A stretch of 64,000 nucleotides of DNA from contig NW_003314275.1 of assembly GCF_000143415.4 (NCBI RefSeq), forward strand, positions 687,955-751,954, written 5' to 3'. The number at the start of each line of letters is the position of its first letter. The stretch's first letter is position 1. The position numbers were made by a program, and so were the translations under genes. The stretch comes from Selaginella moellendorffii (taxonomy: Eukaryota; Plantae; Lycopodiophyta). Shown piece by piece: positions 30,901 through 55,625 of this stretch. Under the pieces are notes generated by a model that did no database searches, was not told the origin of the DNA, and was given only the letters and a program-made list of their open reading frames with translations.

Positions 30901-31590
30901 TTCTCTCGAGTATGCATCGACGAAGACATTGATCTTCCCTAGGGGGGAGAGTGTTGCGAATGTGACTTTGGGTATCGAAAGTTACCTGTCGGCCAGTCCT
31001 TATGGACACTCTTTCCTTACTGCCACGATGGCAGAAGGTTAGTATTGCGGGGCCCGTTATCAATCTCCACCTAAGTTAGTTGAGAAACTGATCTTCGCAT
31101 GTGCACTTGACTAAATAAGCATAAGGAAAGAATTCCAAAGTGTTTATTTAGTCAAGCATACTTGACCTGGTTAAAGAAACTCATTCGTTGACTTGCACTT
31201 GCTAGTGTTAGGAACCTCTGCGATATTGAGCTTGGTCCCTTAATATCGTTAGATGATAGCTTACCGTGTTTGCCAAACACCCTCGCTATCATGCCCTTTG
31301 CATTAGTTTCATTTCAGTCTTAAATGCTATTTATGGAAATTGTCCAGATTTGCTCATTTGGCATATCTACGGAATGTAGAGATTGACTTGAACACAATGG
31401 TGTTCGTCTCGTGTTCAAATTCACAATCTAGCACCATTCCATATTTAATAAGTTTTTAGCTTGTCCCAAAGACTAACTCTTGATACTAAGGGAGGCAGGG
31501 AGCCTTGGGGTGAAAGCCCAAAGCGTGTGTTCCTCAAAGGGGGGGGGGGGAGGGGTTGTGGGGGGTTCCAAATGTATAGTAGGGATAGTG
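24957..31590 (+). mobile_element. Non-autonomous LARD-like LTR element
   Basis: 5' LTR 24957-~26090 (tgttgcga...ctaca); PBS tggtatcaga ~26094; 4.9-kb internal region with no ORF over ~71 aa; PPT aggggggagag before 30952; 3' LTR 30952-31590 closely matches the first ~630 bp of the 5' LTR, then is truncated. Confidence 0.85.
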
Positions 31591-31979
31591 GGGACTTTGT
31601 TTCCCTCTTAGGTCGAGTTGTGACAAGAAGTGTTTCATTGCCACGTTATCCCTATAAATTTCAAAGTGCCTCCCAAGGTAGTGCCGCCACTTCTTGAGTG
31701 CCTTGACCACCGCAAATAATTCCTTCTCATGGGCAGGCCACTTTCGCTGAGCCTTGTCCAACTTCTTTGAGAAGAACGCCACTGGATGGTTGTCTTGCTT
31801 CAAAACTGCACCCAACACTAAGTCTAAAGTATCCATTTCTACCTCAAAGTCCTTACCAAAGTCGGGTAACACCAACACGGGGGTCTTCCTGAACTTCCCT
31901 TTGAGGTGGACAAATGCCGCCTCGCATTCCGTTATCCATACTATCTACCCTTTACCTGTTTGGTCCGTTAAGGGTAGAG

Positions 31980-32810
31980 TTACTCTCGAATAGTGTTTGA
32001 TAAACTTTTGTTATAGTTGCATAGCCCCAAGAATGCCCTCAACTCATGTACATTCGATGGTTGCTCCCATTCCTGGATCGTTTGGACCTTCTTAGGGTCC
32101 ACCTTGAGCCTGTCTTTGCCCACCACATGCCCGAGAAACTTTACCTCTTGTTGAGCAAAGTCCCATTTGCTATCTTTAACATATAGCTTGTGTTCCCTTA
32201 CTTTCTCAAACACCTTCGTCAAGTGTTCGGCATGTTCCTCTAGCATCTCGCTATAGATCAGGATATCATCAATATAAACAACCATGAAGTGATCCAGATA
32301 GGGTAAAAAGATGTGGTTTATCAACGCTGAAAACATTGCCGATGCATTGTACAGCCCAAAGGGCATCACAAAAAACTCGAAGTTTCCATACCTTATTTGA
32401 CAGGTTGTCTTCTCAACATTTTCCTCTAGTACCCTAATTTGGTAGTATCCTGACCTTAAGTCAATCCTTGAGAAGTATTTTGCCTTTCCCAACCTATCAA
32501 ATAGGTCCTCAATCCTTGGCAAAGGGTACTTGTTTTTCTTTGTATACTTGTTGAGTAACCGGTAGTCTATGCACATGCACATAAATTCATCTTTCTTTTC
32601 CATAAATAACACCAGTGCCCCATACGGCAACTTGCTCAACCTAACATACCCTTTGTCCACCAACTTTTCTAGTTGGCATTTGAGCTCCTTGAGTTCCTTT
32701 TCGTTCAAACAATAGGGGGGACGAACCACTGCCTTAGCACCCTCGACCAACTCAATCTTGTGTTCTATTGGTCGTGCGGGGGGCAACCCCGCCGGTAGCT
32801 CCTCTGGCAT
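31980..32810 (-). pseudogene. Reverse transcriptase segment of gypsy B
   Basis: LPPARPIEHKIEL, IDYRLLN, DLRSGYYQI, VMPFGL, VVYIDDILIYS; flanked by stops/frameshifts. Confidence 0.92.
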
Positions 32811-35800
32811 GGTATTCTAGAATTGTTTTAACATTCGCTAGATCACTAAAGGTACTTCTTCCATTCCCGTTTTTTTGTTACTCTTCATTGAGAGTAAGCA
32901 TAAAAATGCTGCATTGGTTCCTTTAGTGAGTTGTCCTCTCGTGGACACCAGGTTTAAGAAAAAGTCTTTAGCCTTACATTGCCTTACCTTTAGATCTTGG
33001 GCCTCCACCCTGGATCGTTCTCCCCAGGCATTCGTTAGTACCACAAGGTTCCTCCCTTGTCCATGTAGGGCTATTACGAACCGATTGAACCAATCCATCC
33101 CGAATATTACGTCAAATCCCACCATATCCAACACAGTGAAATCCATGTCTATTTTCCATGTCCCTATTTCGACTCTCGCTTGTTGAAGTATCTCATCGGT
33201 GCTTTGGCTACCTTAAACAAACTCTATCGTCCTTGGTTCACCCAGCCACTACACCATTAGTCTGGCTTGCCCTACTATGTCTCCAGCCACAAAATTATCC
33301 GAAGCACCCGTATCAATAAGGATCTTAACAAAGCTACCTCTGAGCTTCCCTCGGAGGGCTAGTACTACGTTGTTTCCCACATTACTAACAGACTTGACCT
33401 TTTTATCCATGGGTTTGTCTCTTTTTGCTTGACTCCTCCACGTACTTGCTTGCTGGCCATTGGATTTGCCTTTCCAGAACCCCAAGGACTCATTTTTAGA
33501 GAAACTCTTCTTGAATTTCCCTTTGCTATATGGCCCCTTTGCTAAATGTGGACCCCGACCCCATCACGTTCCCCTTTCGCAAGTTATCATTGAAATGCAC
33601 CTTAATAGTTGCATCAAACGCTTCCTTGTAGTTGGTTGGGTTCCAACGCATCACCTTGCCGCGAACCCAAGTTTGCAAGCCTGATACGAAGGCATGGAAT
33701 GCATCCATATCACCCATATCCGTGACAAGTATCCTTTTTGTCATAAACCCATTCACATACTCTTGAATGGTTCCGGTCTATTTTAGCCTACTCAGCTCAT
33801 CCCTTAGGTACAGAGTAGCATTTGGGGGAACATAAGTCATGCAGATCCTCACCTTCATCATTTCCCAAGTGGCCACCGGTCCTTCATTGGCCTCTGTCGT
33901 TCTTCACCAAGATTTGGCATTATTTGCCAATTATGGTTTTGCACATGGGACCTTCTCCAAGCTCGGTAACTGCAACTCTCGGAAGTAGTCCTCGATATCG
34001 TAAAACCAATCCTCCACCACCTTATAGTCATTCACTCTCTTGAAAACCGGTGAGGGCTTTCGTTTGTACTTGGGAACTACCTAAGGGATTGATTCCATTT
34101 TGGTTTGTTCGACCTTGTTTGGTTTTACCTAAATCCTTGCCGAAGGGTCCGCACCTTCTACGTTGCCAGCATCCGCAGTCTTTCACCTTTTCTTCTGCTT
34201 CTCGTCATGCTTTAGCTTGCATACACGAGTCTTCAGCAGGGCATTGGTCTGTACCAATTATTCTTTTAGAATGTCCAATCAAGCCTTGGATGATTGAACC
34301 TCACCACTAGACTCATGTTTGGAAGTTTCCTCACTGGAGTCCTCCTCATGCAAGGATTCCTCATCCATAGCCTCTTGTTCGACTGGAGGCTCTAGCTCTG
34401 GAGGAAGTTCTGTCTCTGCCTTAATTCATTTTTGCCCTGCCTTTGCCATCTCTTAGCAATCTGCCTCTATCCTCCACTAGAACTAAGAAAAAGGCTCCGA
34501 TACCAAATTGTAAGCCACAAATTTTTCCTTTCCAATTTGCCAACTTACCTCGTCTATTCGACCAACACTGCCTTGACTTTTAACTAAGTTCCCTCGCCAA
34601 GGTTCTTGCCTATTATACTAGCTCCTACTTGGTCCTATTTGCTTTCAGCTACTCACTACATAAGTAACGGAGCGTTAGCCATCCATCCACGGATTCCCAA
34701 ATCTCTTCAAATCCCCCTCCCCGGGTTAGACTGAATTTAAAGTTCAGCTACACTCCCTACAGGCACAAGCAACCAAACACACCAAGCCTCCAAGTTCCTA
34801 ACATCCCTTGGTACAACAAGACTTGATCATGGGACCCTTTAAATCCCAAGCCTTGGGTGCAACACTTGCTTCAAGACACCAGGGCGAAACACTATGGCCT
34901 AAGGGCCCGGTATGGGTACCTCTACCCCCCCACTTCCATCCCGAAGGGAAGGCTCAAGCCTCTAGGAAGGGTGAGGCCCAATGAGCCACAAGGTACTCAA
35001 GTGGGGCACCACTCCACATGAGCCGAGAGTACTGCAGTTAGTTTCCCTTCTGAGAGTGGGAGTTGCTTTTGACCACTTCCTTGGGTGGCCCCTCTGGCAC
35101 CACCCAAGTCCATGCTCACTCCCACCCAAGGCCCCTCAGTCCATGTCTCAACCTCAAGTCAGTTTGGAAGCACCATTTGAGAGTTCTTTCAAGACTGATT
35201 CTTAGATCTCACTATCCTTACTATACTTTTGGAACCCCCTACAGCCCTCCCCCCCCCCGGGAGACACACGCTTTGGGCTTTCACCCCTCGACCTGTATTA
35301 GTACTTGGACTCGATCTCGGACTCGATCTTAGACCCGACTTCAAACTCGGTCTTGGACTCGACCTTGGACTCGACCTCGGACCCGATCTCGGACTCGACC
35401 TCGGACTCGACCTTGGACTCGGTCTCAGACCCGGTCTCGGACTCAATCTCGGACCCAATCTCGGATCTTGGACTCTGTCTCGAACTCAGTCTCGAACTTG
35501 GTCTCAGAGTCGGCCTCGAACTCGATCCCGGACTCTATCTCAAACTCAGTCTTCGAGTCGGTCTTGGACTCGACCTCAGACTCGGTCCCATCCGATAAAC
35601 TCTTTATCATTTTGGTCGTGTTTTCGGGGATCCTTTAGCCTACGACACCTTGGGGAGTTGGTTCCTTACACCCTTTAGATAAGCCATGTATCGTAAGATG
35701 GGGAAAACGAACTAATACAAAGTCATCTACTTTATACTCTACAAATGGACAATGATGGGAGTTGTAACATCATTGTTGCCTCACTTGTACATGGCCTAAA

Positions 35801-37531
35801 TATTCGGGAAACTCTACTCGAACAAATGGAAGAATGCTCATCAAATATTAATCCCATGACCTAGCATCGGTAGCAAAGATAAACCCAACTTCGTTGGTAA
35901 TATTGGATCATGACTATATAAAAGTTTATATGGTGAAGCACCAACAAAACTCTACACCCCTATGACATATGCATTCTGAAGAGATGGCAAATAACCATCC
36001 CAATCTGAATACTGAAAGTTCACGTACTTCGCAATCATTCCTTTGAATGTCCGAACAAGCCTTTCCACCAAATTGTCTAACTGAGGATGATAAATACTCG
36101 TGAAAGTGTGGCGTATCCCCAACTAGGATGTCAAAACATGAAATGCCTCAACCATAAATATAGGACCATTATCCGAAAGAATCCACTCCATACAAGAATG
36201 CTGGAATATCACTCAATTAAGGAGGAAGTATCCAACAATAGTTAAAGAGGCATTAGCAAGAGCATCAACTTCCACCTAATGAGTCAAATAGTCAAAAGCA
36301 ATAATAACATATTCATTGCTAGCAGTCGATCATGAAAAAAGTCCCATAAAATCAAATGCTACCAACTCAAACAGACAGGAAATTATAATTGACTACAATC
36401 GTCCTTCCGTGGCACGAGGGGGAGTATTACAAGCTTGGCACCAAATGTAGTTACGCACATACCGAATGACATTATGTCGCATTTCTGGCCAATAAAAAGA
36501 CCTATGCAGCTTCTTGGTCACATCACGATGTCCCATATACCCACCTAGAACAAGAGAATCATGATAAGCATGAAGAAACCGTGGAATAAAGACAAAAGGC
36601 ACCACCAACCATAAAAGATCATCAGTATCCATCCCCACAAAATAAAGAAGGTCGTCTTCAAGGCGATATTGAGAATGTAAATGCTAAAATGGCAGGTCAT
36701 CAGCAAGTGATATAGGATTCTTAAACCCATCTCAAAGCCTTCAAATCCACGGCTCAATCTTTTAAGCCTCACGAACCTCATCAAGAGAAGGTAGATTTTG
36801 CTCTGCACCTTGTGAACACTGAACATCAAGTATAACAACTACCGATGACACAGAACCCTCATCTAGAAAATCCACAGATGCTAGAACAACAGGCTCGCTA
36901 GAAACATGACAAAAGAGTGGAGAAGAAAAAGGAGCTCGAGAAAGGGCATCAGCATCAGCCATAAAACTCTTTGAGCGATAAACAACATCAAAATCATATA
37001 TCTGAAGCTTCAAATCCCACCGAGCAGTACAACCAACTAGGTTCTTTCGCTTCAATAATGAAGTAATGGCAGCATGATCACCTTCAAGTAATATCCAAGA
37101 ATCATGTAGATATGCATGAAGTTTCTCAAAACCCCAAACTACTGCTAAACATTCCTCCTCTGCTGTGGAGTAGTTCACCTCTACTGGTTGTAATGTACGG
37201 CTTATATATGCAATAGGATGGTGCTGACCAGGCATACTCGGGCTTTTTTGCATGAACACACCTCCAAAACTAATATAAAAAACATCAATGCTCAAAATAA
37301 AAAGTCGAGTGTAGTCAAAATATGCCAAAACCGGAGGAGTCGTCAATAGCTCTTTGAGATCCACAAACAACATCACGAAAAACTCGTACAAACCAAACGG
37401 TGTATGAAAAGTAGTCTTAGGAATATCTTCTTCAGCCATTGGTACTTGCCAGTACCCAGAAGCAAGATCTAGATTGGTAAACAAACGACTTTGCCCTAGA
37501 CAATCCAAGAGATCAGTAGTATGAAGAAGAG

Positions 37532-37799
37532 CATCTCAAACTCCATCTCGAGTCCATCTCAGACTCCATCTTGGGTCCATCTCGGACTCCATCTTAGGTC
37601 CATTTCAGATCTATCTCAGACTCCATCTCGCTTCGTGTTTGTTCTTCAAGCACTTTATTGGGAGTTCCACTCCCACTCTCGACCTTTCAAGTCGGAGCTT
37701 TTAGTCCAAAGATATTACACTTGTTTAGCTTTTGCTTTGGCCACCACCATGTGGTGCCCTTTCGACTCCACTTTGGGGCTTATGGATTTGTGTCTCACA
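37532..37799 (-). mobile_element. First 268 bp of a family-1 solo LTR (remainder at 49059-50192)
   Basis: Reverse complement starts tgtgagacacaaatcc like 16144 and breaks within the hexamer array; flank 37800-37804 reads ATTTA on the minus strand. Confidence 0.9.
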
Positions 37800-37980
37800 T
37801 AAATATAGCTAAGGTCAAGGAGGCACCATGCCATCATCAGGAATGTGGTTCAAGAATCAGGAATTGTACAGGAAATCAGAGTCAGGAATAGAGAAGTGTC
37901 TCAAGAGTCAAAAATGTGGTCTGTGGGTCAGGAATTCAGTGAGAGTCAAGAATGTGGCAAGAATTGAGGGATTCCTGACA
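37800..37980 (-). mobile_element. Displaced first part of the 5' LTR of gypsy D
   Basis: Minus strand begins tgtcagga at 37980, pairing with the ...tcttgaca end at ~50373; shares the ATTTA TSD with the solo LTR; contains short gtca(g/a)gaat repeats. Confidence 0.65.
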
Positions 37981-38699
37981 TTCTCCAATATGAGCAAAGT
38001 TGTTGATGTGAGGCAAGATGCCCCAAATGATGAACCTTATTAGAATAGATGTATAAGATTTGAGAGCATTAGACCAAAGAGAGCCTCCTAACACTTTAAT
38101 AGAGATACAGTCCTAGATGAATGTGTATAGAAGGCTACTCCCAAAAATAGATAAATATCAACTTACCATGCTTAGATAAATGTTGATGAAGAGATGGTAA
38201 ATTTTTGTGAGCAAGTGAAACATAATTGCATATAACCACATACAAGAGATTAGCCATGATCCATAATGCTCTTTTTACCATTGCTATCACATATTCTTTC
38301 AATCTATAAATAAAATTATTTTCGTTAAAGTGATACTCCAAAGTAATAATAAAATCCATTTCCATCTCCATTAGGCACAACATCTACTGATTTGGTTCTT
38401 GAACACCTGACCAAGCTCCTCCACTACTGCTGCTACTGCCACTTCTGGAAGATCTTGCCTCTCAATCCAAAACCCTAACAACAGCTGTCAAATGGTCTTG
38501 CACCCCACGGCCCTGCTTGCGGCACATGAGGCTCCATGGAACTATCCATGGAACTCATCATCATTGCAGCTTAATTCCAAAATTGCCACCAGCAATTGTT
38601 GGGCATCCAGACAAGATGCCCACCAACAAGGAGGAGGCCAAGGCCAAGTTCGAGGCTTACGGACTCTAAGATTCTCAAACTGTCTTGTTCTACGTACCA

Positions 38700-39620
38700 T
38701 TTGCACCTACAAACTCACTAAGCAAGCAGCTACTTCAGTTTCTGTACAGTATAGTAGCTTTGCTATTGTGAAGCTAAAGGGGTGTAAAGGCAATATGGTT
38801 GGACACAGCTATAGCTTCTTGGGAATTTCGGCCACACACGATGCCTCATGTCGAAAGCCATAGGCTGTAAGAAGTAAAAGTCATCCAAGAAAACAAGCAG
38901 GTTGACACCCACAACAACCCATTGTGGGTCGTACTCAGGATTGCTCCCACGAATGCCATCAAGCTGCTTCACCACCATACCACTTATCACCTTCAAGAGC
39001 CCACTCTGGTTAACCTCTAGTAGTGTCAGCCCCCCATCATGCAGCATAGTGCAACCACCATGATCCTCAGCCCAGAGCGGAAAGGAAACGCATGGCAGTA
39101 AGTGAAGCCGGCCAGCTCCTCCGGCTTTGGAAACACTGGCAAGGCTCGTTTACCTTGCTCAGAGATGTCCACCCCACTCCACTTGCCGCTGCTCTAGTCG
39201 TAGGCCTTGAGCCCGCCATCCCAGAAAACAAACTCACTGGTGAGGCCTCCCATGGGAGGCACATCTCTCGCTAGCCATGCCATCACCTCCTTGAGTGTTG
39301 GTGCTCAAGTCGAAGGTGTGAAGGTGGTGGCGGCCACGCTCACCAACATTTGTGTGGAGGACGTGGACCCAGAACTGGCGCGCACTTGCAACATTGTCTG
39401 GCCGTGTCGGTATGAAAAGTCCTGCTCGGTGTCATCCTCGAGCACTGGCACGGCGGGGAGGATGCGCTGCAGTCCAGTGACCGGGTTGCACACCGTCGCG
39501 TGGAAGCACCAGTCATCGCAGAGGCTGCAGATGAGGCCCAAGGGGGTGTAGTGACGAGGGAGGAGTGTGTTGGACACCACGGCGATCATCCCCTCCAGCA
39601 ATCCCTCTTGCGCACCACGG
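38700..39620 (-). pseudogene. Decayed F-box-associated-type gene fragment
   Basis: GLICSL..ATVCNPVTGLQRILP resembles the GLlC..VCNP.T....LP motif of plant F-box proteins; in-frame stops follow. Confidence 0.5.
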
Positions 39621-40983
39621 CAACCAGCCCCTCCAGCAGTCCCTCTTGCGCAGTACTGCTGGCTGCCCTTGCTGACTTACCTGGTACATATATCAAAAAC
39701 CATTGCGTGCAACTGGTTTTTAGACATAGTTTTTCTAACAAAAACCATGGTCACCTGTGATTGTCCACGTGGCTGAAAATCAGTTCATACTGATCGACCT
39801 TAAGTTTGCATATCGGGTAGACATAGAGCACTTGTACAGTGACAAGAAGGAAGCAGCTGCATCCGATTGTCACAAGCTGCTTCCCTGCTTGCTGGAGTTG
39901 TGGATGGGTTTGCACCTTGAGGATCAGGTGATTGTTGGAATGCTGGGGAAGTGTTGGGCATGTTTGCAAACCACATCGTCTGGATCATGTACTCAGGGAC
40001 AGACAAGGTTCTTCTTGCCGGCAGCTGATGGTTACTTTCCTCTGCTGCAAGTCTAAAGTTTATGTTGTCAGAATAGCGATCTGTGGAAACAAGAGTGTTT
40101 TGGAGGTCTGTAGTGGTCCATGTGGCAGAGGTACTCGCTCAGATCCCTTGCAGGTGACTGGCGTGCCTAGAGTGCTGCCCATTGTCCAATGTGACGAAGC
40201 ATTACCCAAAGTTCAAAGAGCATAGCGGCGCCCCAAGATTATACCTGCTATACAGGCTTGAGCCAAGCCAAGTGTTACTACCAAGTGGGACTCGTGGCAA
40301 AGGTTCGGCATGTTGGTGGTGGAGTGCTCCATGCAAGCCTTGCAGGTCATAGAGCGTAGTAGGTGGCTTCAAGTTTCGCAACAGAGTCACCTAGGAGGTA
40401 AATGGCCCAAGAGCAACACTAAGCGTTTGTGCTCATGGAGTGTAGCAGGTGGCCTCAAATTTCGTGGTGGAGGCACCTGAGAGGCAGACAGCCCAAGAGC
40501 AGCGCCAGGCATTTGTGCTCATGGTTTTGCTAGTTTCTTTAAGAATGTGCTTTCAATGTTGTATTAGCCACTAATGGTCAGTGGAGAAATGTACTTATAT
40601 GTTACATCGTGGCAAAGGTTGGGATATAGAAGCGCACATCCCTCCAATGTTTCACTCTCTTGTTTGCTAGGCCAGGCCAAATTGCTCTCACTGCGCACAG
40701 TAAGGAATGGAATCCATTTTACTCTTGAGTGAAAAGTACATAGTTTTTAAATTTACACTAAGTTTTTCAAACCCCTCAAGTAGTCCCGGATCAATTTCGA
40801 CATGAAGACCTCGATGAAGCCCCATTTACTCTGCACCGTCTTTGTTGCAGATGACATCCCTGGCTTCATATGCCGCTAACGATGGTTGTAGCCAGGCCTC
40901 GCAGGCTTTCGAGAAGATGGCATGGACGTGGTTTCAGGCAAGTGTGTTACCATGGTGTTCTCACAAACTTTTCAAAGCTTTAT

Positions 40984-42110
40984 TTACATTGAGGAACCCT
41001 GCAACCAAGAGCTTGCAATCGCCCAACAATCCATCTCTCTCGCCTGGAGCAGCACATACAAGAGTATGGCACAAACACATCCCACCGCGAGATTGGATCC
41101 CTGCAAGATGGCAATGCAGCAGAGCATCACAAACAAGTCCCTCCTACTAGTTTGATCCCGGCACGCCATCACCAGCTCCACCCCGGAGAAGAGCAGCAAG
41201 ATCCCCAACAGTCCCACTGGAAAAGGTGGGAGAATTCTCACCAGTGAGCCCCCCAAGAGAAGCCCCAGCACAAGCTTGCCACCGCCACCCCACTCGTGGC
41301 TCCGAAACGATACTCCCCGGCCAGTCCTCCAGCGCCATGGCAAACCGGGAGAGCTCCAAACCAGCAGCCCACCAACTTCATGAGCCCTACGCTCACCGAG
41401 ACTTTGGTCGGAGTCACGGCGTCCTTCTTGGCCGGGAAGAGATCGCTCGAGAGCTTGCAAACCGCCACCACCGAATTGCGGATGGTGAGAGGGCCAAACT
41501 GGAGCTCCTTGAGAATGTGTGGCCTCCTCACGAACGCCAGGATGATCCCGAGCAAACACTGCCAAGGCAGTCGGGATCCTCTGGAAAAACTTCACGAGCT
41601 TTGACGATCTCGCTTGATGTTCTTCACGGTGCTCTTCATGATCATCGTGATGACGATCACCTTCACTGTTCGTCGCGAAGTACTCGTAGCCCTCGCCGGA
41701 TCCATTCACCAGCACGATGAATGCGAAGCAAATCACTGCGAGGAGAATTCCATCCAAGCCCAGCCATGGTCGATCACCCATTGCCTTGTCCCTAGAGAGA
41801 TTTTGATCCTTCATCACGTACTTGACAGCCTTGACCGCGAAAGAGAGCCCATTGCCATGAACCACCGGCAATGGCACGATGCAAGCCACGACCCGTGATC
41901 AAGCCCGTGATTCCAAGCACAAACACGATCGCAGACACAGTGATCCCCGCAGCCATGATCTCATCCACACTGAGATGCTTGGATTCGGTGAAGGCGCATC
42001 GACACGCCAAAGAGCACGCGGATGAATGTGCCCAGGTCGCCCAGCGAGCCGCTGAGCTCCTGCCATGGCCGCCTGCACTGGAGATTGCCGCGCAGCCCTG
42101 TGCCATCACT
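40984..42110 (-). pseudogene. MOT1: Molybdate transporter (MOT1/MOT2 family) pseudogene
   Basis: ELSGSLGDLGTF, EIMAAGI, RPWLGLDG, VSVGLMKLVGCWFGALPVCHGAGGLAGEYRFG, FPVGLLGILLLFSGVEL spread over different frames, with internal deletions. Confidence 0.88.
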
Positions 42111-42391
42111 GGGAGAACCACCGCTCCTCCTGCTCGCCCCACTGACCTCCAAGAACCCTAAATTTATATAGTCCAAAAGCTGGCTCTTGTACTGACCATT
42201 GGAAATGAGCAAAGAATTTTCTCTTTAATCATACATGATGATCTGTCAAAAAATATCCTCTTTAATCACGAGCTACACTCACACTAGTTTCAAACAAAAT
42301 TGTTACTATTTGCTAATAGAACATAGGCAAAAGAATTCCTAGAATCTACACTTAGAGCTTGTTCTAGCACAACACCATGAGATCTTTGTCC

Positions 42392-42800
42392 TCAATTTCT
42401 AGACTTTGCTCCCAGCAAGCACATCCAATCCACTGAAACTGGCTTGTAATGCATGCTCCTCACAAGTTCCTCGGCCTCTTCCACACACCCAGCTCGCCCC
42501 AAGCAATCCACCATGCAGCAGTAACCTTTTGGTAGTGGCGAGATGCCCTTCTTGGGCGTGTGCCAAGAACATAATGACCCACAAGTGGCAATCGCGTCGC
42601 TCCATGGAGTCAAACACTGCTCGCGCGCGCTGGATCTTGCCCAGCTTGCCATACCGAAGGATGACGAGATTGGAGAGGTAGCAGCAATCGCCAGGCAGCA
42701 TTTGCTTCTGGGCGATCTCGATCCGGGAATGGGCATCGATTGCCTGCGAGGAATTGGTCGCGGAAGTGATGAGATCCACACACTCGGACTTGGACAGCAT
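42392..42800 (-). pseudogene. PLS-class PPR gene remnant with large internal deletion
   Basis: NLVILRYGKLGKIQRARAVFDSMERRD..W..M..AHAQEGH frameshifted onto YCCMVDCLGRAGCVEEAEELVRSM..P..VDWMCLLGA. Confidence 0.85.
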
Positions 42801-43042
42801 CAGTTTCGCTCAGCCTCTCACGAGATTAGAGAGAAGGGAGAGATTAGGGAAATCCCCTAGCTTGGTTTGTTCATTCTAGTGAGTCAACGCATTGCAAAGA
42901 GCTTTTCTTAGCTACTATAGATAGGAATAGAAATAAAGTGTGTAATTTGTGAACCTTAAAGTGAAATAAAAATGACACTACACACTCATATAAATATGAC
43001 AATGATAGATCACACCCGGTATTCAAGTGGGAACAGTATTTT

Positions 43043-43297
43043 ACACATTGTGGCCATTCAAGGTACATTTGTGCTGTTTCATTTTCAATCGCTTGATGTT
43101 ATCTTTTGTACGTTTGGATGCATTCTCATCCAAGGACAAAGTGAAAGACCTAGTCAACATGTCTCTGGATTCTACTGCAGACATGAGGAAACTAGAAGAG
43201 GATCGAAAGACGTATGCACGTAGAATGTTTGGATGCTAAGAACACGGCAATGTGCAAGTGTTTGGAGCCAAAGCTCAGTGTGAAAAAGAGTAAGTAA
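43043..43297 (+). pseudogene. Frameshifted copy of the last ~260 bp of the CR-type gene
   Basis: Matches the reverse complement of 19812-20073 (HIVAIQGTFVLFH, LDAFSSKDKVKDLV, ending aagagtaagtaa) with small frameshifting deletions. Confidence 0.93.
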
Positions 43298-46085
43298 GAC
43301 TTCATAGTTTGTTCTGTTCACAATCAATCAGAGAATTTTTCTTGACTGCAGAGGCAAAGCAGTGACTGCACCAGCTCAATTCTTTGCCTACATTGTAGCT
43401 TTTGGTCACTTTGCACTTTTGACTGTTCTAGAGCGAGAGAGGACGTGTGTGGCCAGAAGAGAGATGCTCCAGTCTGAAAAAGCTGGTCCTTATGTACAGT
43501 TTGAAAAGTTGGTCCCCACGAGTCCATTGAGGTTATCCTGGAGCTTGCACACGAATAGTTAAAATGGACGAGAGGAGAGAAGTATAATATGCACATAGTT
43601 TATATTTAACTTTTAACTATTCTCTAATTGTATTAATAAGCCAATGGCCCGCTAAGATCGACGGTCCGTGTCCGACCTCTCTAGTGCTTTTGTTTTTCGC
43701 AACTATACAGCTAAAAACCTGTGTGTGGCAAATTCAAGATGACATGCAATTAAAGCTATGATGCAATGGAATGATTATCTTGGTTCAAAAAGAATTCCCA
43801 AGTTTAAAAGACATTAGAACCACATAGTACTCAAAGTTTTGATAGTGTTGTGTGAATCTGATGTGGAGTGATTGTTAAATTCTCTCCCTTTTGTGGTTAA
43901 GCACGAGAGACTGCTCCAATATTGTTGTTCAAGAGCATAGGAGAGCTGGGAGGAAGGCGGCTGCTCTTGAGTTTCAAGGCGGGAGTAGCCTCCTTGTCTC
44001 AATTAGGCTGCTTTGAAGAGATCTGGCGATGGAATCAATCGCGGAGCTGTTGGTTCGGCTTTTCATGGTTTGCAGACTACAGTCTTTCTAGATCTGCTCA
44101 AGTTTGTGTGCCTTTTCATCATGGAGGTACTGCCCATCTGTTTTGCAAGGCTGCCACAGCTCGAATCTGCCTTTGCCCTCACCTATCCTCTCCACTGCTT
44201 TCTTGAGCCAATCTCCGTAGATTTTTCGGCGGCGGCGCAACTTTTCATCCGACCACTCTATAGGTCGGGCTTTCCAGATCGCCAAAAATCGGTCAGTTTC
44301 GACATCGGATGTAGTTGCCTATGCGGATCTGCGCGCAGTGGATGGGCTCACGTTTTTCTCACGGATATGATGAAAATTTCGTTTCTTTCGGGAAAGTAGA
44401 GGCCCTTTGCAAGCATCTATAACGATTTAGCCTTTGTGTGCTTGCCGCAATTACCATCTTTTTTTAGGCGGCATCTGCAGCAGCCTTTTATGGTTTATGT
44501 GCTTTTTGTGACCTTATTCGTGAGGATATGCTGCTGTGAGCATGTGTATACTCTGCTCACTCACACCAACGGCTTTCGGGAGGTTCTTCATACTTTTGCT
44601 TCGGCGACCGCATGTTGCGAGTGGCTAGATTTTCTTCGCGAGGGTGCATCGACGTGATTCTTCTTCATCAGGCTGGGTATTTGGCGCTATAGGGCAAGTC
44701 TATATTGCCTTTATTTGGTCAATTTCGACACCTGCTGTAGAAGTTATGTCACGGACCCTGCCGAGCTGCGTACTGCGCACGGTCTCCTGGATATCTTCTG
44801 GGTCGAGCAACGTTTTCGAAATTTTGACATGTTTTGGTTTCTGCAGATCTGTGTCTTGCATATGTGACCATTTTTGTACGCTTCTGCCGTTGGATGCAGC
44901 TGCTGCTATCAAGTTTGTTTGGGTGGCACCTGCAGTGAGAACATGTCTTCACGGGCTTATCTTCTGATTGGCGCAGCGAATTAGACTGTTTCTGCTTTCA
45001 ACCTGTACTGGGCTTTGATTTGATACTGTGAGCTCGTGTTTCTTTTGGTGAACAAGTACTTAACATGCAACATGGTTTTCACTTCGTTATTGCAATCTGC
45101 TTGTTGCATCATTGGAGGAGGAAAACAGGTGAACTTCAGCAATCTGTTGGTAGCGGCTTGAGGTTACTTCTTCATGTATTCTTCGATTTTGACGTGCGTA
45201 TATGGTACGGTGGTCAGTCAGAGGCGGTATGTGGATTTACATGAAGGATTGGAAGAAGTGTAATGATTTGGAGGCTGCTTTATCAACAAATCAGTTTAAT
45301 AAGGGTGGGTGGGCGGGGAACATGTTTGGGTACCCCAAGAATAAATTAAGAATTCATCTGTTTTATGTTTTTTGTTTTTACAATATATATCCCCATTTTC
45401 TTGATATTGTTCAAAGGATGCAAAGCACAACTTCCAGCCAAATGATACTTGTGAGGGCTTCCAGTAGGTACTTAGTCAAGTGGCTTAATTTTCACTTACA
45501 AATCATGGGGATAGTTTTTGATAATGAGTATATACATGAGCGCCCATAGTTGCCCACCAACTTAGATCGGGGTTAATCCCGTCAAAGTTTATTAATAGCT
45601 CTTGCAAATGCTATCAACTAGCTTGCAAATGTTGTATGTCATCATGCATTTTTAATGCTATTGCAAACAAATAATTAGTTTTTGTCTCAAGATATTTGAA
45701 TATGCTTTTTATATTTGAATCTTCTGCTTTCTTTAAATTTTGAATTTTCATATTATTTAGAACTAAAGATAATATATTTCTTTGTTTTTGGTGATAACTT
45801 TATAAACATGTATAGACTGTCTATAGTATGAAAATACAGTATATATAGAATTTATACAGAAACTATCTTAAAACACTATATTTGTTGTTTTTACAAATTA
45901 GTCTTCTTTACTGGAAACTTTTATTTAAGTTTCAAAATATCATTGACTTATGGATTTTTGGAGTTATGGTAGATATGTTTATCTTGGTTCTAAAAATCTT
46001 TTATAACATAGTAGCTAGAATTTAAAATTTTTAAAATTTTGATTTTAAATTTGCTATCAATTTTAGAACTAGTCTAAATTTTGGT

Positions 46086-49058
46086 TGTGAGGTCCAAATG
46101 TATGGCTACGATGCTATATACTAATATTAGCATAGTGGGATTTTGGTAGCCGTCAGATTGGTTTTAATTCGGACCACTTACAAGCTAAGGTTTTTGGGTT
46201 AATTAATATGCATTTTTCTATATTCCTTTTCCATATTCTATGCATTCACATTGGTGGAGTTAAAAAGCACCTTTGATTGTCCCTCAGGAATGCTTGAATT
46301 TGGGATTTTAATTTAAATTTAGCTTTTGCATTGTCTAGATTTTGTAGCGCATGTGATCATGGGATGAGATTTGGATATATTGTCACCGTGGATCCTTAGA
46401 ACCTTGGGGGATAAATAGGGATAAAATAGCCACTAAGGGCTCTCTCATCAAGCAATCGCCCCTTTTCCAGTTAGCTTAAGGGGAGAGAGATAAAGTGTGC
46501 TACAATTGGTATCAGAGCAAATGGCACGGGTTCGATTCCCATTGATTAATAACTACTTAAAAGTATAATATACCCTTGAGCAAGGTATATTCTTACCCCT
46601 AAATTTGAAATCGTACGTATTGGGCATCCGAGCAAGGTATATTCTTACCCCTAAATTTGAAATCGTACGTATTGAGCATCCATGCGTACATCCTTCCTTT
46701 TGTGTGGAGTATCCACGGATGAAGGTATTCACCGTGGAACTGCGGTACGGGTGGATGATTAGTTGCCTCACATGGAATAGCTGGTCTACACAATGGAAGG
46801 ATTGGTAGATTGAGTGCGGAAATGGAGGTACTGGTTCCCCTTGGCTCACAATGGAAGGATTGGTAGATTGAGTGCGGAAATGGAGGTACTGGTTCCCCTT
46901 GGCTCAGTAGGGGTTGTTAGCCAATAGTCAATGAGGACATTGACATCTCTGAAAGGGGGGTGAGTATAGCGCATGTGATCATGGGATGAGATTTGAATAT
47001 ACTGTCACTGTGGATCCTTGGAACCTTGGGGGATAAATGGGGATAAAATAGCCACTACATCAAGCAATTGCCCCTTTTCTAGTTGGCTTAAGGGGAGAGA
47101 GATAAAGTGTGCTACAGATTTAGCTTTTTCCATTTTCTTTCTTTTGTTCTTTCATTTCAGGATTTTGGTTTAAATCTAACTTTTTGCATTGTCTAGATCT
47201 CCTTTTCCTTCTAGCTTTATTTTATTTCATTTCTCTTCTTTTGCTTTTTCCTTTTCATTCATCTTCATGGTAGATTAGGAATCTCTTCCTTCTTTGACTC
47301 TGGAGCAGTAGTTAATACAATTGTTTGATGCTATACGATTGCAATTGCATAACCAAACTCAATGTTGGCCACAACATTCCTAGCTTGATCCGCTCCGACA
47401 TATTTAGCTCCGTACAAAGCAAGAGGTTTTAGAAACAAAGATTGCCCTTAACGAAGGCGATGCAATTATTGGAAAGTATCATCACAATCATCGGCATGTC
47501 TAAATGCATGTTTAAAGATGTCCGGGAGAACACTCCAATCTCTACTTATGGCTGAACTCAAACCATTGTACCACTATAATGCCGTCCCTTAGAGATACGT
47601 GGGAAACTCATGCAAATGTCAAGCATCATCCCAGGAATGATATGTGGCAATCACCATGAAGTGATCGAAAAAATGGTACACATCATCCCCAAGATTCCTG
47701 GGAAAGAACTCCGGCCAAACGCGAGGATTGGCACCAAGAGCAAGAGGAGTTGTACTATGTGCCGTGAATCAAGATCTTGTCGGACTTATGCATGCATTTG
47801 CTCCAACCACTCTTGACGATGCTCTTCACTTGGCACAATATTATGAGATGTCGCCTCTTCCACTTTTTGCTGCACATCCTTCAACTCCACTTCCTATAAG
47901 TGATGGTCCTGTTCTAATGGAGGTTGATGTTGCTGCTACTCCAGTCCAAGGACAAGGGTGAGGCCATGGTCATGGCCATGATGTTCATTGTTGGGCATGT
48001 GATGAAGTTGGTCACACTTATTAGTGTTGTCAGCATTTTCTAGATTGGCAGTTACCATTTCCTAGGTGGAGACTTTTGCGTCAACAATGTCCTGTTGGTG
48101 CTACTGCAATGGAAGGTCTGGACACTAAAATGCATCTGGTAAACGAGGAATCATGCGAATAACAGAGGGACCTTGCGCAAATAAGTTGGTGACCCCTCCA
48201 TCTTTTTTTCAAGAGTATCATCAAGGGGTTCACTCGGCACTAGTTCATCCAGTGTTTACTTTTCAAGCTCGTTTTTATAACAAGCGATCTCCTATTATTC
48301 TTTCTGTATTGGTTGATATAGGTTCAAATTTATCTTTTATTACTCAGGTTGCCATCTACACTTGCATCATGCGGTGGAGCTAGTTTTCATTCTTTATGGC
48401 AATAGCCATATATATGTATGTGCACGAGATGAGGCAAACTTAGTTGTGCATGTGGGTGATCTTAAGCTTGGGTTGCAATTATTGCGGGTGGTGCCGAATC
48501 AAGCTTTTGACCTCATCCTTTGTATGGATTGATTGCAGCGCAATCATGCCAAGTGTGACTTTGAGGCTTCTCCCCTTTGTCTTATACTTCCTTATATTTC
48601 ATCCATTCCTCTTACTTCCGTACCTCTTCTTCTTTCTTCTTTTACCTCTACTTCCATTACTTTTGTCCCCCCACTACTTCCTTCTATGTTTCCGTCTTGT
48701 TTTGCTCTTCCCTTTTCCAATCCTTCTGACAATCTTTGTGTTGCAGGGGTTGACCGGCTCATGAAAGAGTATTCTGATCTCTTTGAATTTAACCTATTGT
48801 CTGGGGCCAAGATTGCCACATATCATCCGATTCCGACCAAGGATGCTTGTCCAATCAAGGTTTATATTTATCATCGATCACCCAAAGAGATCAAGATTTT
48901 ACATGCAAATGTCAATGAGATGTTGGTAAAGGGTGTTATTTGGAAGTCGCAGAGTACTTAGGCATGTGAACCTCATCTTGTGACGAAGCCTGATGGAAGT
49001 ATCTGTTTTTGCATCAACTATCATCCATTAAATGAAGTGACGATCCTGAATGTGTACC
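46086..49058 (+). mobile_element. Ty3/gypsy element C, 5' half (5' LTR, gag, protease, RT start)
   Basis: LTR 46086-46250 (tgtgagg...ttcaca) then ttggtggag; gag APTTLDDALHLA..PVLMEVD and decayed CWACDEVGH knuckle; protease VLVDIGS; RT KPDGSICFCINYHPLN; 4-bp TSD TGGT shared with 23432-23435. Confidence 0.85.
46343..47116 (+). mobile_element. TRIM family 2, copy 1
   Basis: LTRs 46343-46504 and 46965-47116; PBS tggtatcagagc 46507-46518; PPT gaaagggggg; TSD GATTT. Confidence 0.93.
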
Positions 49059-50192
49059 GAGTATGAGATGGAACCGAGATCAGAACCGAGACCGAGACCA
49101 AGACCGAGTCTGAGTCCGAAACTAAGACCGAGACCAAGTCTGAGTCCAAGTCCGAGTCCGAGTTAGAGTCCGAATACTAATACAGGCTATTGGGTGAAAG
49201 CCCAAAGCTATTGTCCCCCAAGGGGGGGGGGAGGGTTGTGGGGGGTTCCAAAAGTATAGCAAGGAGAGTGTGGAGCCCAGTGGAGCCAGTTTGGCTAGGA
49301 AAGGCCAGTTTGGCCCAAGAAGGCTATACCTAGGTATTGGGTGATGGGTTGACCACTGGGAAATCCAAAGCTAGAGTGAATACAGACCAACAAGTGGGGT
49401 AGCTTGGTGAAGTGTTCAAAAGTTGGCTCTAGTTCTCCCGGGAGATCGAATGGTTGATGCTCTCAGTCCAAGTGTGGGTGGCACTACCTACTTGGATATC
49501 TGGCATGGCTCAATGGAACCTCACTCTAAGCCCATGGCTAAAGCACCCAAAGGCGAAAGGTGGGGAGAGTACCCACAAGACTCGCATAAAGCCACAGTGT
49601 TCCAAAATGTTGTCCCAAAGTCCTAAATTGTGAAAAGGAAGAAGAGCAACACTCTAGTGTAGAGACCAAAGATACAGTCATGTGAGGAGGAAGTCCCAGG
49701 GGACCGTGGGACTTAGTGGTCGGGCCTATGGGCCTTGATCTAGTGGCAGTGTTAGCGAACACGGCCATGAACAGAAAGGGACTTGGTGGGGACCAGAAAA
49801 GGGATATTGGGGAAGGTTATTCCCATGCCTACAGGCATCCTAAGGATGCTAAGGAGTGGATCTAGGATGATCACTTATGAATAGATGGCTCAATCTTTGA
49901 AAGATGGGACTGTGATACAGGTGGTGTTAGACCACCAATATTACCAAGGTGAAGGGGCATGGCCTTAGTGTAATGGGCTGATATGTCAGTGATACCTTGG
50001 GGTGTCGGTCATGGGATCAGACACGTGAAGCACTTGGGCCAAGTGTAAAGGTTGAGTGGCAGGAATGCCATTCTCGGGGCTAACAAACCTAAGTCCGGAA
50101 TAGGACTTATGGAGTTTGTGAGTGAGACTCCTTTAAGTGGTTGGAGGTGTGGTTAAGTGACTAAAGTAGAATGGAAAAATTATTTGTTTATA
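49059..50192 (+). mobile_element. Remainder of the split family-1 solo LTR
   Basis: Colinear with ~16670-17806; followed by ATTTA at 50193-50197. Confidence 0.9.
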
Positions 50193-50197
50193 ATTTA

Positions 50198-53100
50198 GGT
50201 TGTCCTTAATCCAAGAGTGGTGGAGCTTCATCAACCTAGTATATATAGGTTAGCCTTGTTTCATTTCTCCACAATCTAAATCAACTCCAATTTAAGGTTT
50301 CTTCTTCGTCTCCACTAACTTTTCTCTTTGTCTTCTGCATTTTTCAGTCTTGATCTTGTTGGGGGTCTTGACAATTTGATTCAAATTGTGCCTTTTACTT
50401 TTGCTTTAGCTCATTTTGATTGTTTGATTGCCTTTGCCTTTTTCCCCCTTTTCTTTCTTCTTTGTTGATAGAGTCTCCAAGCCATCATGATTTTTTTGCC
50501 AAAGTCCTTGCAAAAATCCAGCTTGAGAATACTGAGTTGAAGGCGACCCTTCTTCATATGCAACAAGAGCTTGTTTCACTTTCGGCTCAAGGATCAAGCA
50601 AAGTTCCTAAACCGAAGGTGAGTTTCCCGGTGAAGTTCTCAAGCAAGCATTCGGAGCTTCGCGGATTCCTGAACCAGATGGAGCTGATCTTCGCACTTCA
50701 ACATCAGCGGTACCCCACTCCCAAGTCTCAAATCGGTGCGATCGGGATGCTACTCGAAAGTGTAGCTTTGTCATGGTTTTCTGCTTTCCTTGAGAAGAGC
50801 ATGAAAGTGGTCATGGTTCCAGAGCTGATGGATTTTCAATTGTTCAAAGAGAAGCTTGAAGCATGTTTTGGCAAGACGGATCAAGTTCAAGCTGCCACCA
50901 CAAAGATGAGACATTTCTCTCAAGGGTCTCGTCTTGCCTCAATCTATGCTGCGGAGTTCCAACTCCTTGCCTTGGACACTCAGTGGGATGAGCGGGCCTT
51001 GATTGATCAATTTCGTTTTGGTCTCAACAATAGTGTCAAGGCTTTGTTGCTCACCATATAGAATCCCACGAACCTATCAGACGCCATCAACAAAGCTGTT
51101 CAATGTGACAATTATCTTTTTGAACATCATTAGGAAAGTTGCCACGCCACCATTTTTTCGTCCCAGACTCAAAAATCCTAACTTGAGTCTTTGGGGCATA
51201 CTCCTAAACCTATTGCTCTAGTCCCAATGGATATTTCTGGTACTCCCCAACTCATTAGAGGGAAGTTGAGTCCTGCTGAAAAGCAACATTGAGTATCTTA
51301 GAATCTTTGACTCTACTGTGCTGATTTTAATCACAAAGCAACTGTGTGTCCCAAGAAGCCTCCCCAACTGCTCGAGTTCACTCTACCTCAAGGTCCATCT
51401 CTGTTGCAGTCGGGAAATGACCCTGTCCAAATAGAGTAGGAGCTGTCTGTTTGGACTCCCGGAATAAATATCACTTTTCTTCTTTATCAAGCTCCTCACC
51501 TCCTTTCATCAAAGCCACCACCAATTCTTGCAACTTTCGCATCCCATGTCTCCTTTCTTTCACCGGACAATCAGGACTCAAGGCTCTAGCGCTACTGGAC
51601 TCAGGCGCAACTTCTTACTTCATGGACATGGACTTTGTTGCTTGACATCACGTTCCTCTTTCTCCTACTATACGGGATCTGAGGGTTGAATGCATTGGCA
51701 GGCATTTTGTGTTTCCATCTTCTGGACTTAAGGAAATGTTGCCCATTCAAGTACACATCGGGTCCATCATCACCAATCGCCTTCAACATCATCAACAGCA
51801 AGTCCTCCTCTGTGGTGCTCGGCCTTCTTTGGTTCCAACTGCGGCAGCCTCAGATCTATTGGAAGGAATTACAGCTCGTCTCTCCCACATCACCATCTCC
51901 CATGTCTTTCCTTGCTGTTCATCGAGTCCGAATCAGGAAAAGTTCCCTAAACTCAAATTGGGGTTTTGTTCCTGACTCTATGAAGTTTTCACCCTCTTTA
52001 CTCCCTATCCCTCAATCTTCTTTTCCCTCTCTTCCATCTTACACTAAACAGTGTAGTTGTACGCCTCCTCCTATCTCCACAATCACTATGAAAGACAAAG
52101 AACCTATTTTCCTTTTTGCTTTGCATGTTTCTCCTGTCAGTCTTCCTGAGAAGTATTATGATTTTGGGGATGTGTTTGACAAGAAAAAAGCTAGTGTACT
52201 ACATGTTCATCAGCCTTACAACTGTCCCATTGATTTACAGGAAAGAGCATCACCTCCATGGGGGCCTATCTACGGGTTATCCCCATCTGAGCTTAAGGCC
52301 CTCAAAGAGTACATGGATGAGAACCTTGCATCAGGGTTCATTTAACATTTGCAATCCCTGACTGGAGCGTCTATCTTCTTTGTCAAAAAGAAGGATGAGA
52401 GTTTGCGGCTAGTCAGTGACTACCGAGGTTTGAACCAGGTGATTGTTCGGAACCGTTATCCACTGCCCCTGATCTCAAACCTGTTGGAACACCTCGGCGG
52501 TGCCTGCTTCTTCACTAAGATCGACCTCCGTGGAGTATACAACCTGATCCGGATCTAGCCTGGCGATGAATGGAAGACTGTGTTCTAAACCTGCTATGGC
52601 CACTTTGAGTACATTGTCATGCCGTTTGGCTTGACAAATGCTTTAGTAGTTTTCCAACACATACCAAACAACATCTTTCGGGAGTTTCTTGATTAGATGG
52701 TGATTGTAGCGCATGTGATCATGGGATGAGATTTGGATATACTGTCACTGTGGATTCTTGGAACCTTGGGGGATAAATGGGGATAAAATAGCCACTAAGG
52801 GCTCTCTCATCAAGTAATTGCCCCTTTTCTAGTTGGCTTAAGGGGAGAGAGATAAGGTGCGTTACAGTTGGTATCGGAGCTAATGGCACGGGTTCGATTC
52901 CCATTGATTAGTGGCTACTTAAAAGTTTAATATACCCTTAAGCAAGGTATATTCCTACCCCTAAATTTGAAATCGTACGTATTAGGCATCCATGCGTATG
53001 TCCTTCCTCTTGTGTAGAGTATCCACGGACGAAGGTATCCACCGTGGGATTGCGGTACGGGTGGACGATTAGTTCTCACATGGAATAACTGGTCTACACA

Positions 53101-55625
53101 ATGGAAGGATTGGTAGATTGAGTGCGAAAATGGAGGTGCTGATTCCCCTTGGCTTAGTAGGGGTTATTAGTCAATAGTCAATGAGGACATTGACATTTCT
53201 GAAGGGGGGGTGAGTGTAGCGCATGTGATCACGGGATGAGATTTGGATATACTATCACCGTAGATCCTTGGAACCTTAGGGGATAAATGCGAAAATGGAG
53301 GTGCTGATTCCCCTTGGCTTAGTAAGGGTTATTAGTCAATAGTCAATGAGGACATTGACATTTCTGAAGGGGGGGTGAGTGTAGCGCATGTGATCATGGG
53401 ATGAGATTTGGATATACTATCACCGTAGATCCTTGGAACCTTGGGGGATAAATGGAGATAAAATAGCCACTAAGGGCTCTCTCATCAAGCAATTGCCCCT
53501 TTTCCAGTTGGCTTAAGGGGAGAGAGATAAGGTGCGCTACAGTGATCATCTACTTCGACGACATCCTCATTTACTCAAAAACTCACCGTGGATCCTTGGA
53601 ACCTTGGGGGATAAATGAAGATAAAATAGCCACTAAGGGCTCTTTCATCAAGCAATTGCCCCTTTTCCAGTTGGCTTAAGGGGAGAGAGATAAGGTGCAC
53701 TACAGTGATCATCTACCTCGACGACATCCTCATTTACTCAAAGACTGAGGAGGAGCATGACAAACATGTGCGCAAGGTGCTAGCGAAGCTATGGGAACAT
53801 GGCCTATACGATAAGCTTGAGAAATGTTCCTTCAATCATGAGTCTGTGGAGTTCCTTGGGTACATTGTCACTCATAAGGGTATCACGATGGATCCTGCCA
53901 AAGTCAAAACTATTTTCAAATGGGAACCTCTACAATCAATGTCGGATGTTCAAGTTTACCTTGGCTTCGCCAACTTCTACCACAAATTCATTGATCACTA
54001 CTCCGACATTGTCCTTCCTCTCACACATCTCACTCACAAGGATGTTCTCTTTTCTTGGTTTGCTGTTGCCCAGCAGGCCTTCGACACACTCAAGGCAGCC
54101 TTCAGTTCTACTCCTGTCTTAATCCATGCTGATCCCTCACAACCTTTCTTCATCGAGGTAGACGCCCTCGACATTGCCATCGGTGCTGTGCTATCTCAAC
54201 TCGGAGTGGATTAGGAATTTCATCTGGTCGCTTTCCATTCTCGGAAATTCTAGCCTGTAGAGATCAATTACGAAATCCACGACAAGGAGCTCCTTGCCAT
54301 CATGGATTCCTTTGGAGAGTGGTGTCATTTCTTGGAGGGGGTGAGCCATCAAATAACGATTTGGACGGATCACAAAAATCTTGAGTACTTTGCCACTTTC
54401 CGAGTTTTAGCCATCGTTAGGCAAAGTGGGCACAATTCCTGAGTCGGTTTGACTTTATTATCAAGTACAAACCTAGAAAGCTTCAGGGCCTTCTTGATGC
54501 TCTTTCAAGGCACTCCTATCTCAATCTCATGCCTGGTAATCCTGCCTTCGATTAACAGGATCAAGTTATCCTCAATCCTGATCGGCTTCAAGTTATGGCA
54601 AATTTCCTTGGCCCCTTAGAACTTCTCCTTAATAGACACGATTTTCAATCTGACAACCTCGCTAGCAACATTTTCCCCCATCTTCAGGCTGGACACCCAG
54701 TGACTCCTGATTGCCGATGATTTGATAAGTTCGAGTTCTTAGATGGCTTATTGTACCGTGGGGAGTAGCTTTAGGTTCCTGAAGGTGATGCTCGAAAGTT
54801 GGTCCTAATGGCATGCCATGATAACCTGACTGCTGGTCACTTCGGCATTGCAAAAACCTATGAGCTGGTTGCACAGGACTTTTGGTGGCCTCACATGAAC
54901 AACTACATCAAAGCTTTTGTTACCTCTTGTGACTCTTATGCCTGGAATAAGATACCTCGCCATCTTCCTTCAAGTTTGCTTCGTTCCCTCTCGGTCCCTT
55001 CAAGTCCTTGGGAATCCATCTCCATGGATTTCTTGAGTGATCTTTCGAGTTCTGAAGGCTTCAATAGCATTTTAGTTGTGGTGGATTGCTTCACAAAGAT
55101 GGTGCACTTCTTGCCGTGTACTAAGGAGTTTTTAGGCAAGAATATGGCAAAATTTGTATTCAAAGAAATTTTCCAACTTCATGGGATTCCTACAGATGTG
55201 GTTTCGAATCGGGGGCCTTAGTTCATCTCTCATTTCTGGCAACGGTTCTTGCAGCTGCTTGAAGTGAAAGCCAACCTCTCTTTAGCGTATCATCCTTAAA
55301 TTGATGGATAGTCCGAGCGAACGATTTAGATGTTGAAACCTTCATCAACTATCATCAAGATGACTGGTTCGATATCCTTCCCCTTGCTGAGTTTTCCTAT
55401 AACAACTCTGTTCACTCCTCCCCCTCCCTTTGAGTTTCCCCCTTCTTTGCAAACTCTAGCCGAAATCCTCAATTCAATCTCTCACTTCCTTCTCCATCCG
55501 AATCCTCTCGTTCAAATCCTTACTCTAAGGCATTTGTCTCCAACCTCCAAGAAATCCACAACTTCATCTCCTTCCACCTCCATCATGCTCAGAAATCTCA
55601 CAAAACATTCACAAATGTCCATCAT
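50198..55625 (+). mobile_element. Ty3/gypsy element D (chromovirus Tf1/sushi/Tcn1-like gag), decayed and 3'-truncated
   Basis: LTR end ~50373; gag PKVSFPVKFSS..ELRGFL..ALSWF..QGSRLASIYAAEF; protease ALLDSGAT; [24 protein letters not shown]; RNase H; integrase CHDNLTAGHFG..PWESISMDF; no 3' LTR seen. Confidence 0.9.
52705..53541 (+). mobile_element. TRIM family 2, copy 2, with internal tandem duplication, inserted just before the RT YxDD of gypsy D
   Basis: LTR 52705-52866, PBS tggtatcggagc, partial LTR 53215-53289, full LTR 53380-53541, TSD GTGAT; an extra partial LTR at 53584-53704. Confidence 0.92.

Follow-up and report, generated by a model that had tools for sequence, protein, structure and literature searches.

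Described inversions and the spikemoss locus

Breakage and subsequent non-homologous end joining (NHEJ) is one standard model for the origin of chromosomal inversions (PMC3355041), and the human inversion HsInv0379, a 415 kb segment of chromosome 19, has been assigned to it (PMC4591017). Its breaks are clean, with neither indels nor microhomology, its breakpoints fall in unrelated L1 copies, and its ancestral order was inferred from transposable element (TE) copies that are abruptly interrupted (PMC4591017). Here we describe a segment of the genome of the spikemoss Selaginella moellendorffii with the same anatomy, reconstructed by the same logic. Within a 64,000-nucleotide stretch of contig NW_003314275.1 (hereafter the window, to which all positions refer), the segment 37532-49058, 11,527 bp in length, lies back to front when judged by the order that three split or mis-oriented retroelements imply. 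We put the probability that this is a genuine chromosomal inversion, formed by two double-strand breaks and homology-independent end joining (classical NHEJ), at roughly 80%. HsInv0379 is 415 kb long and backed by polymerase chain reaction genotyping and an outgroup, whereas the spikemoss segment is 11.5 kb long and is seen in a single assembly.

Other described inversions share some features of this locus and differ in others. The fixed inversions 2h and 2q of D. mojavensis are attributed to staggered breaks plus NHEJ (PMC3355041) and, like the spikemoss case, were rejoined without homology between the two sites. In both of them, single-copy DNA is duplicated in inverted orientation at either end, the product of staggered single-strand breaks, whereas no base is duplicated in the spikemoss. 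Ectopic recombination between Galileo or BuT5 copies leaves copies of a single TE family that are chimeric and have exchanged target-site duplications (TSDs) (PMC2775673, PMC3355041), and maize inversions formed by alternative transposition of Ac/Ds (PMC8225341) are reported to have a transposon terminus at a junction. These inversions resemble the spikemoss case in having their breakpoints in TE sequence. Unlike them, the spikemoss breakpoints cut two unrelated elements internally, and the TSD is restored within each single element. The two signatures, exchanged TSDs for ectopic TE recombination and flanking inverted duplications for staggered breaks, are those by which these routes are told apart (PMC3355041). 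The spikemoss inversion is thus an ordinary new instance of the known NHEJ type. The literature on haplotype inversions in S. moellendorffii yielded nothing relevant.

The region is a plant repeat nest, dense with nested retroelements. Its sole run of N within the window, 100 N at 2327-2426, lies far from the inversion; from 2427 onward the sequence is a single uninterrupted contig, and both breakpoints fall within it. The segment was flipped in silico by script and BLAST coordinates before and after were compared. All coordinates and strings quoted in the first-pass annotation of this DNA, which had proposed a clean inversion here, are present in the sequence.

Two interrupted retroelements and their reciprocal junctions

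The breakpoints, referred to as J1 and J2, are as follows.

37531/37532: J1; reverse transcriptase (RT) sequence stops at 37531 and the array of a family-1 long terminal repeat (LTR) starts at 37532, with no microhomology or visible filler
49058/49059: J2; RT sequence stops at 49058, and from 49059 the family-1 LTR array continues

The junctions are reciprocal, with the RT halves ending at 37531 and 49058 and the LTR halves at 37532 and 49059. J1 reads ...tatgaagaagag then catctcaaactcc... (37531 / 37532), and J2 reads ...ctgaatgtgtacc then gagtatgagatgg... (49058 / 49059).

The RT belongs to a Ty3/gypsy element, here called gypsy C. Its N-terminal part at 48533-49057 (+) contains one in-frame stop and ends ...VTKPDGSICFCINYHPLNEVTILNVY, leaving over base 49058 (c); the stretch 48962-49057 (+) reads ...CINYHPLNEVTILNVY. 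The second half lies on the opposite strand, where from 37529 downward (-) the sequence LLHTTDLLDCLGQSRLFTNLDLASGYWQVPM... runs on into RNase H and integrase in one frame that contains stops. Its translation from 37529 downward (-) reads LLHTTDLLDCLGQSRLFTNLDLASGYWQ, with bases 37531-37530 (ct on the - strand) remaining ahead of it. Aligned to Ty3 RT (4ol8_A), the first half covers residues 105-128 and projects to an end at residue 131; the second half aligns from residue 137 and projects to a start at residue 133. When the halves were joined with an X at the break, they gave an ungapped 80-column alignment to an unrelated gypsy RT of the window (31983-32810). We also compared them with 30 reference RTs, database homologues recovered with the 255-aa RT-RNaseH piece that forms the second RT half. 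In 29 of the 30, exactly one residue stands between the projected ends of the halves, and it is always Pro, from the Y/F-P-L-P-R-I-D motif; the remaining RT has its own one-residue deletion just upstream. The split codon c|ct encodes Pro, the invariant residue. Because the leftover c|ct spells the one intervening Pro, the RT break lost and gained nothing. The first-pass annotation had held that reversal rejoins this RT in frame through a Pro, and Ty3 RT, the window RT and 29 of the 30 references agree. The four residues after the junction are off consensus (LHTT versus PRID). At the DNA level most of them differ by a single base from the expected codons, which we read as pointing to decay rather than filler.

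The second interrupted element was recognized by self-BLAST, which finds two full family-1 copies in the window and a third in opposite-strand pieces at 37532-37800 and 49059-50182. The copies and their flanks are these.

8736-10373 (-): intact family-1 solo LTR with perfect TSD GTGGA
16144-17806 (+): intact family-1 solo LTR with perfect TSD AAGGG
37532-37799 (-): 5' part of the split family-1 solo LTR, starting TGTGAGACAC at 37799, with a 12-mer array at 37532-37630
49059-50192 (+): 3' part of the split family-1 solo LTR, ending ...tttgtttata, its CA mutated to TA
37800-37804 (-): left TSD, ATTTA
50193-50197 (+): right TSD, ATTTA

The intact solo LTRs measure ~1.64-1.66 kb and set the family termini, TGTGAGACAC...TTA(C/T)A; TA stands in place of the terminal CA in two of the three family-1 copies. 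The split copy has a 5-bp TSD only once its halves are rejoined. Flipping the segment also produces one high-scoring segment pair (HSP) that crosses the LTR junction, 16567-17796 against the restored 48960-50182 (83%, 1236 bp). The break lies inside an array of gagatg-gagtcc 12-mers. Once restored, the unit gagatg|gagtat has its full length and keeps the register, and after it comes the same gagatggaaccgaga transition with which the array closes in both intact copies. Loss at this break is unlikely, because the 12-mer register would be kept by chance in only 1/12 cases; the loss of whole 12-mer units is possible. The proposal that reversal rejoins this solo LTR in hexamer register with ATTTA on both sides is thus borne out by the TSDs and by the junction-crossing HSP.

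The remaining parts of gypsy C lie on either side of J1 and within the segment.

23432-23435 (-): TSD TGGT beside the C 3' LTR, read directly, matching 46082-46085
23436-23610 (-): C 3' LTR with TG..CA ends, preceded by the polypurine tract gagaggaggggatga at about 23611-23625
35844-37531 (-): 3' part of C pol, identified by translation, Pfam and tblastn
46082-46085 (+): TSD TGGT beside the C 5' LTR
46086-46250 (+): C 5' LTR with TG..CA ends, followed by ttggtggag, which resembles a primer-binding site
46251-49058 (+): 5' internal part of C, holding a nested family-G solo LTR and the RT N-terminus, which extends to ...ILNVY and base one of the Pro codon

The two LTRs, 46086-46250 (+) and 23610 down to 23436 (-), both start TGTGAGG and end CACA. 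They are 81.7% identical in an end-to-end alignment, with nothing aligning beyond it, at a Kimura two-parameter (K2P) distance of 0.22 made up of 28 transitions versus 2 transversions. So extreme a transition excess is in line with methylated-cytosine deamination in silenced repeats. At present the LTRs are inverted; once flipped back they become direct repeats of a 17-kb element, about 5.3 kb net of a nested element E. The Ty3/gypsy hallmarks of C (direct LTRs, a primer-binding-site-like sequence, a polypurine tract, a TSD and the order RT, RNase H, integrase) come together only when the flip is undone. Direct LTRs with TSD TGGT had been predicted for C, and the TG..CA ends and polypurine tract add to that prediction. 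The TSD of C is 4 bp, versus 5 bp at five solo LTRs in the window, and is modest evidence alone.

The 3' part of C pol comprises, in order, the RT after the split Pro, RNase H, an integrase zinc-binding domain and a weak core match (Pfam RVT_1, RT_RNaseH, Integrase_H2C2 and a weak rve_3); Pfam detected no gag or protease in C's 5' open reading frames (ORFs). The RT core is without ~150 residues at ~37365, including the YxDD catalytic region, the frame passing directly from ...EFFVMLF to the RT-RNaseH connection, and stops are many. Gypsy C is a long dead element.

A third element, gypsy D, is involved through its putative 5' LTR.

37805-37980 (-): first half of the putative gypsy D 5' LTR, starting tgtca at 37980
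50198-50373 (+): second half, ending tgaca (50369-50373), just upstream of D gag

The continuity of 37805 with 50198 depends on the ATTTA TSD of the solo LTR. The first-pass annotation had assigned the tgtca...tgaca piece to D. The termini are present as claimed and lie upstream of gag, which makes the piece a plausible candidate for the D 5' LTR, but no partner or 3' LTR was found anywhere in the window by BLAST with word size 9 or 7.

These data support a single inversion with breakpoints at 37531/37532 and 49058/49059 as the account of every anomaly. That four independent coincidences should all resolve at one pair of phosphodiester bonds is more than chance can explain.

Mechanism, order of events and competing explanations

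With the ancestral sites written out, microhomology is 0 bp at J1 and at J2, as the first-pass annotation had stated. Nor do the ancestral sites have any direct or inverted similarity: scored within +/-200 bp, the best local score is 13, versus 12.6 +/- 1.6 for shuffles. Inspection of the junctions found no visible filler, duplication, shared inverted repeat, transposon end or N at either. The end bases at the junctions are not reverse complements and no RT residue is duplicated, so there is no inverted duplication. No transposon or LTR terminus lies exactly at a junction, J1 and J2 being mid-RT and mid-array.

In such a dense retroelement nest, a transposon-driven origin deserves consideration, whether by ectopic recombination of inverted repeats, by alternative transposition of a DNA transposon or by an integrase-pasted pair of elements. 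It is extremely improbable: the ancestral sites are unrelated, no element terminus marks the junctions, the TSDs have not been exchanged between two elements but each comes from one element split mid-body, and the LTRs of C, direct prior to the event, lie away from the breakpoints. Non-allelic homologous (ectopic) recombination between inverted TE copies was rejected, the sites being an RT gene and an unrelated LTR array and the TSDs being restored within single elements; alternative transposition and integrase-coupled double insertion were rejected for want of an element terminus at either junction. Homology-driven routes are excluded because there is neither microhomology nor inverted similarity between the sites, and the earlier claim that LTR-LTR recombination was not responsible holds on the same grounds.

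A single sequence never names an enzyme directly, and both template switching (fork stalling and template switching or microhomology-mediated break-induced replication, FoSTeS/MMBIR) and topoisomerase-II subunit exchange can invert a segment without long homology, in place of two free double-strand breaks. The usual trace of template switching is 2-5 bp of microhomology, often accompanied by duplications or deletions, whereas microhomology here is 0 bp and the RT junction is exact; we consider this pair of mechanisms very unlikely. Staggered cuts that were filled in should have left short inverted duplications at the two junctions. None is present and no RT residue is duplicated, and staggered breaks with fill-in were rejected.

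The preferred reading is therefore one of end joining. Two double-strand breaks about 11.5 kb apart would have occurred close in time, one in the RT gene of the dead Ty3/gypsy element C and the other in the 12-mer array of the family-1 solo LTR, and the intervening piece would have been rejoined back to front by classical NHEJ. We infer blunt, simultaneous breaks and their repair by NHEJ, bluntness being drawn from the exactness of the RT junction. End joining after two breaks had also been the first reading of this locus, and the junction anatomy supports it. That reading had further held that neither breakpoint lost sequence: this stands for the RT break, which is exact to the nucleotide, and less securely for the LTR break, where the array is shorter than in the intact copies. 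The order of events can be deduced. The inversion cuts both gypsy C and an already-solo family-1 LTR, and is therefore later than the insertion of C and than the reduction of the family-1 element to a solo LTR, in keeping with what was first proposed for these two elements.

Several observations weigh against a genuine inversion formed without loss. The array of the broken family-1 copy has ~10 units (~110 bp) versus ~22-27 (~270-310 bp) in the intact copies, and is thus shorter by about 160-200 bp; the same copy has a separate, unrelated deletion of ~75 bp. The TSD of C is only 4 bp, for which a chance match is expected about 1 time in 200-250. Seven ORFs, one of them crossing J1, had no exact match in the protein collection, and for the 255-aa RT-RNaseH piece there was no near-identical (allelic) protein, the best match reaching 66% over a fifth of the query. 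Finally, so clean a flip is equally expected from computational error.

This last point leads to the possibility that assembly, patching or curation turned the block round, and that only the un-inverted order exists in the plant. A flip made by software inherently entails neither loss nor microhomology, as here. Scaffold-orientation errors are located at gaps. There is no N or gap marker at the breakpoints, the only gap being that at 2327-2426, and the sequences broken, an RT gene and a short degenerate array, have no common similarity that might mislead an overlap assembler. An artefact of data handling thus appears unlikely, and a chromosomal inversion by NHEJ remains the better explanation of these junctions.

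The inversion provides a base-pair-resolved example in which nested retroelements and their TSDs serve as a barcode, so that a rearrangement can be reconstructed from one sequence. TE annotators would mis-call C, the solo LTR and possibly D if the flip were ignored. The locus is also one data point toward a possible genome-wide set of clean inversions. That it is one of many scarless blunt inversions in S. moellendorffii is unlikely; were such inversions real and over-represented relative to other plants, a source of clean paired breaks, or else unusually accurate end joining, would be a property of the species or its clonal lineage, which would then offer a natural system in which to study inversion formation.

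Sequence carried by and flanking the inversion

Between the split D LTR and the C 5' LTR, the inversion carries DNA that is not of retroelement origin.

37981-46081: non-retroelement DNA carried by the inversion
40987-42142 (-): pieces of a MOT1-type molybdate transporter (MFS_MOT1) in three overlapping frames, identified by Pfam and tblastn
42395-42800 (-): pentatricopeptide repeat (PPR) fragment, with weak PPR-repeat matches in two overlapping frames, identified by Pfam
42995-43301 (+): copy of the final ~110 codons of the ORF 19812-22832, identified by self-BLAST

Positions 11-75 and 76-111 of the MFS_MOT1 profile are in separate frames, suggesting either a pseudogene with a frameshift or indels from sequencing. 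The segment 42395-42800 is probably a decayed PPR gene fragment. The ORF copy at 42995-43301 (+) is ~85-90% identical to 19808-20135 (-); the pair is inverted now and would have been direct before the inversion. The intact 1006-aa ORF 19812-22832 itself has no Pfam match at E<=0.01. The inversion has no evident function: it reorients a MOT1-like pseudogene, a PPR fragment and retroelement debris, and no intact gene is changed.

Younger elements, dated relative to C by K2P distance, are nested in its 3' region, and the body of gypsy D lies downstream of J2. Two family-G solo LTRs interrupt these elements, one within the inverted segment.

23871-35612: younger elements nested in the C 3' region, identified by self-BLAST and K2P
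Element E, nested in C: LTRs of ~1.1 kb, K2P 0.18, with RT at 31983-32810 (-)
Element F, nested in E: LTRs at 24955-25584 and 30950-31590, K2P 0.09
46343-47116: family-G solo LTR in C's 5' leader, TSD GATTT
50420-55218 (+): gypsy D internal region
50420-51058 (+): D gag
52220-52708 (+): D RT N-terminus
52705-53704: family-G solo LTR splitting D's RT just before the YLDD motif, TSD GTGAT
53705-54510 (+): D RT C-terminus with RNase H
54799-55218 (+): D integrase

The family-G copies are solo-LTR-like, with TG..CA ends, internal sub-repeats of ~165 bp and ~92% identity. Elsewhere in the window, and outside the inversion finding, 13311-14570 (+) encodes a fairly complete gypsy-type RT-RNaseH with ~38% identity to database RTs over ~415 aa.

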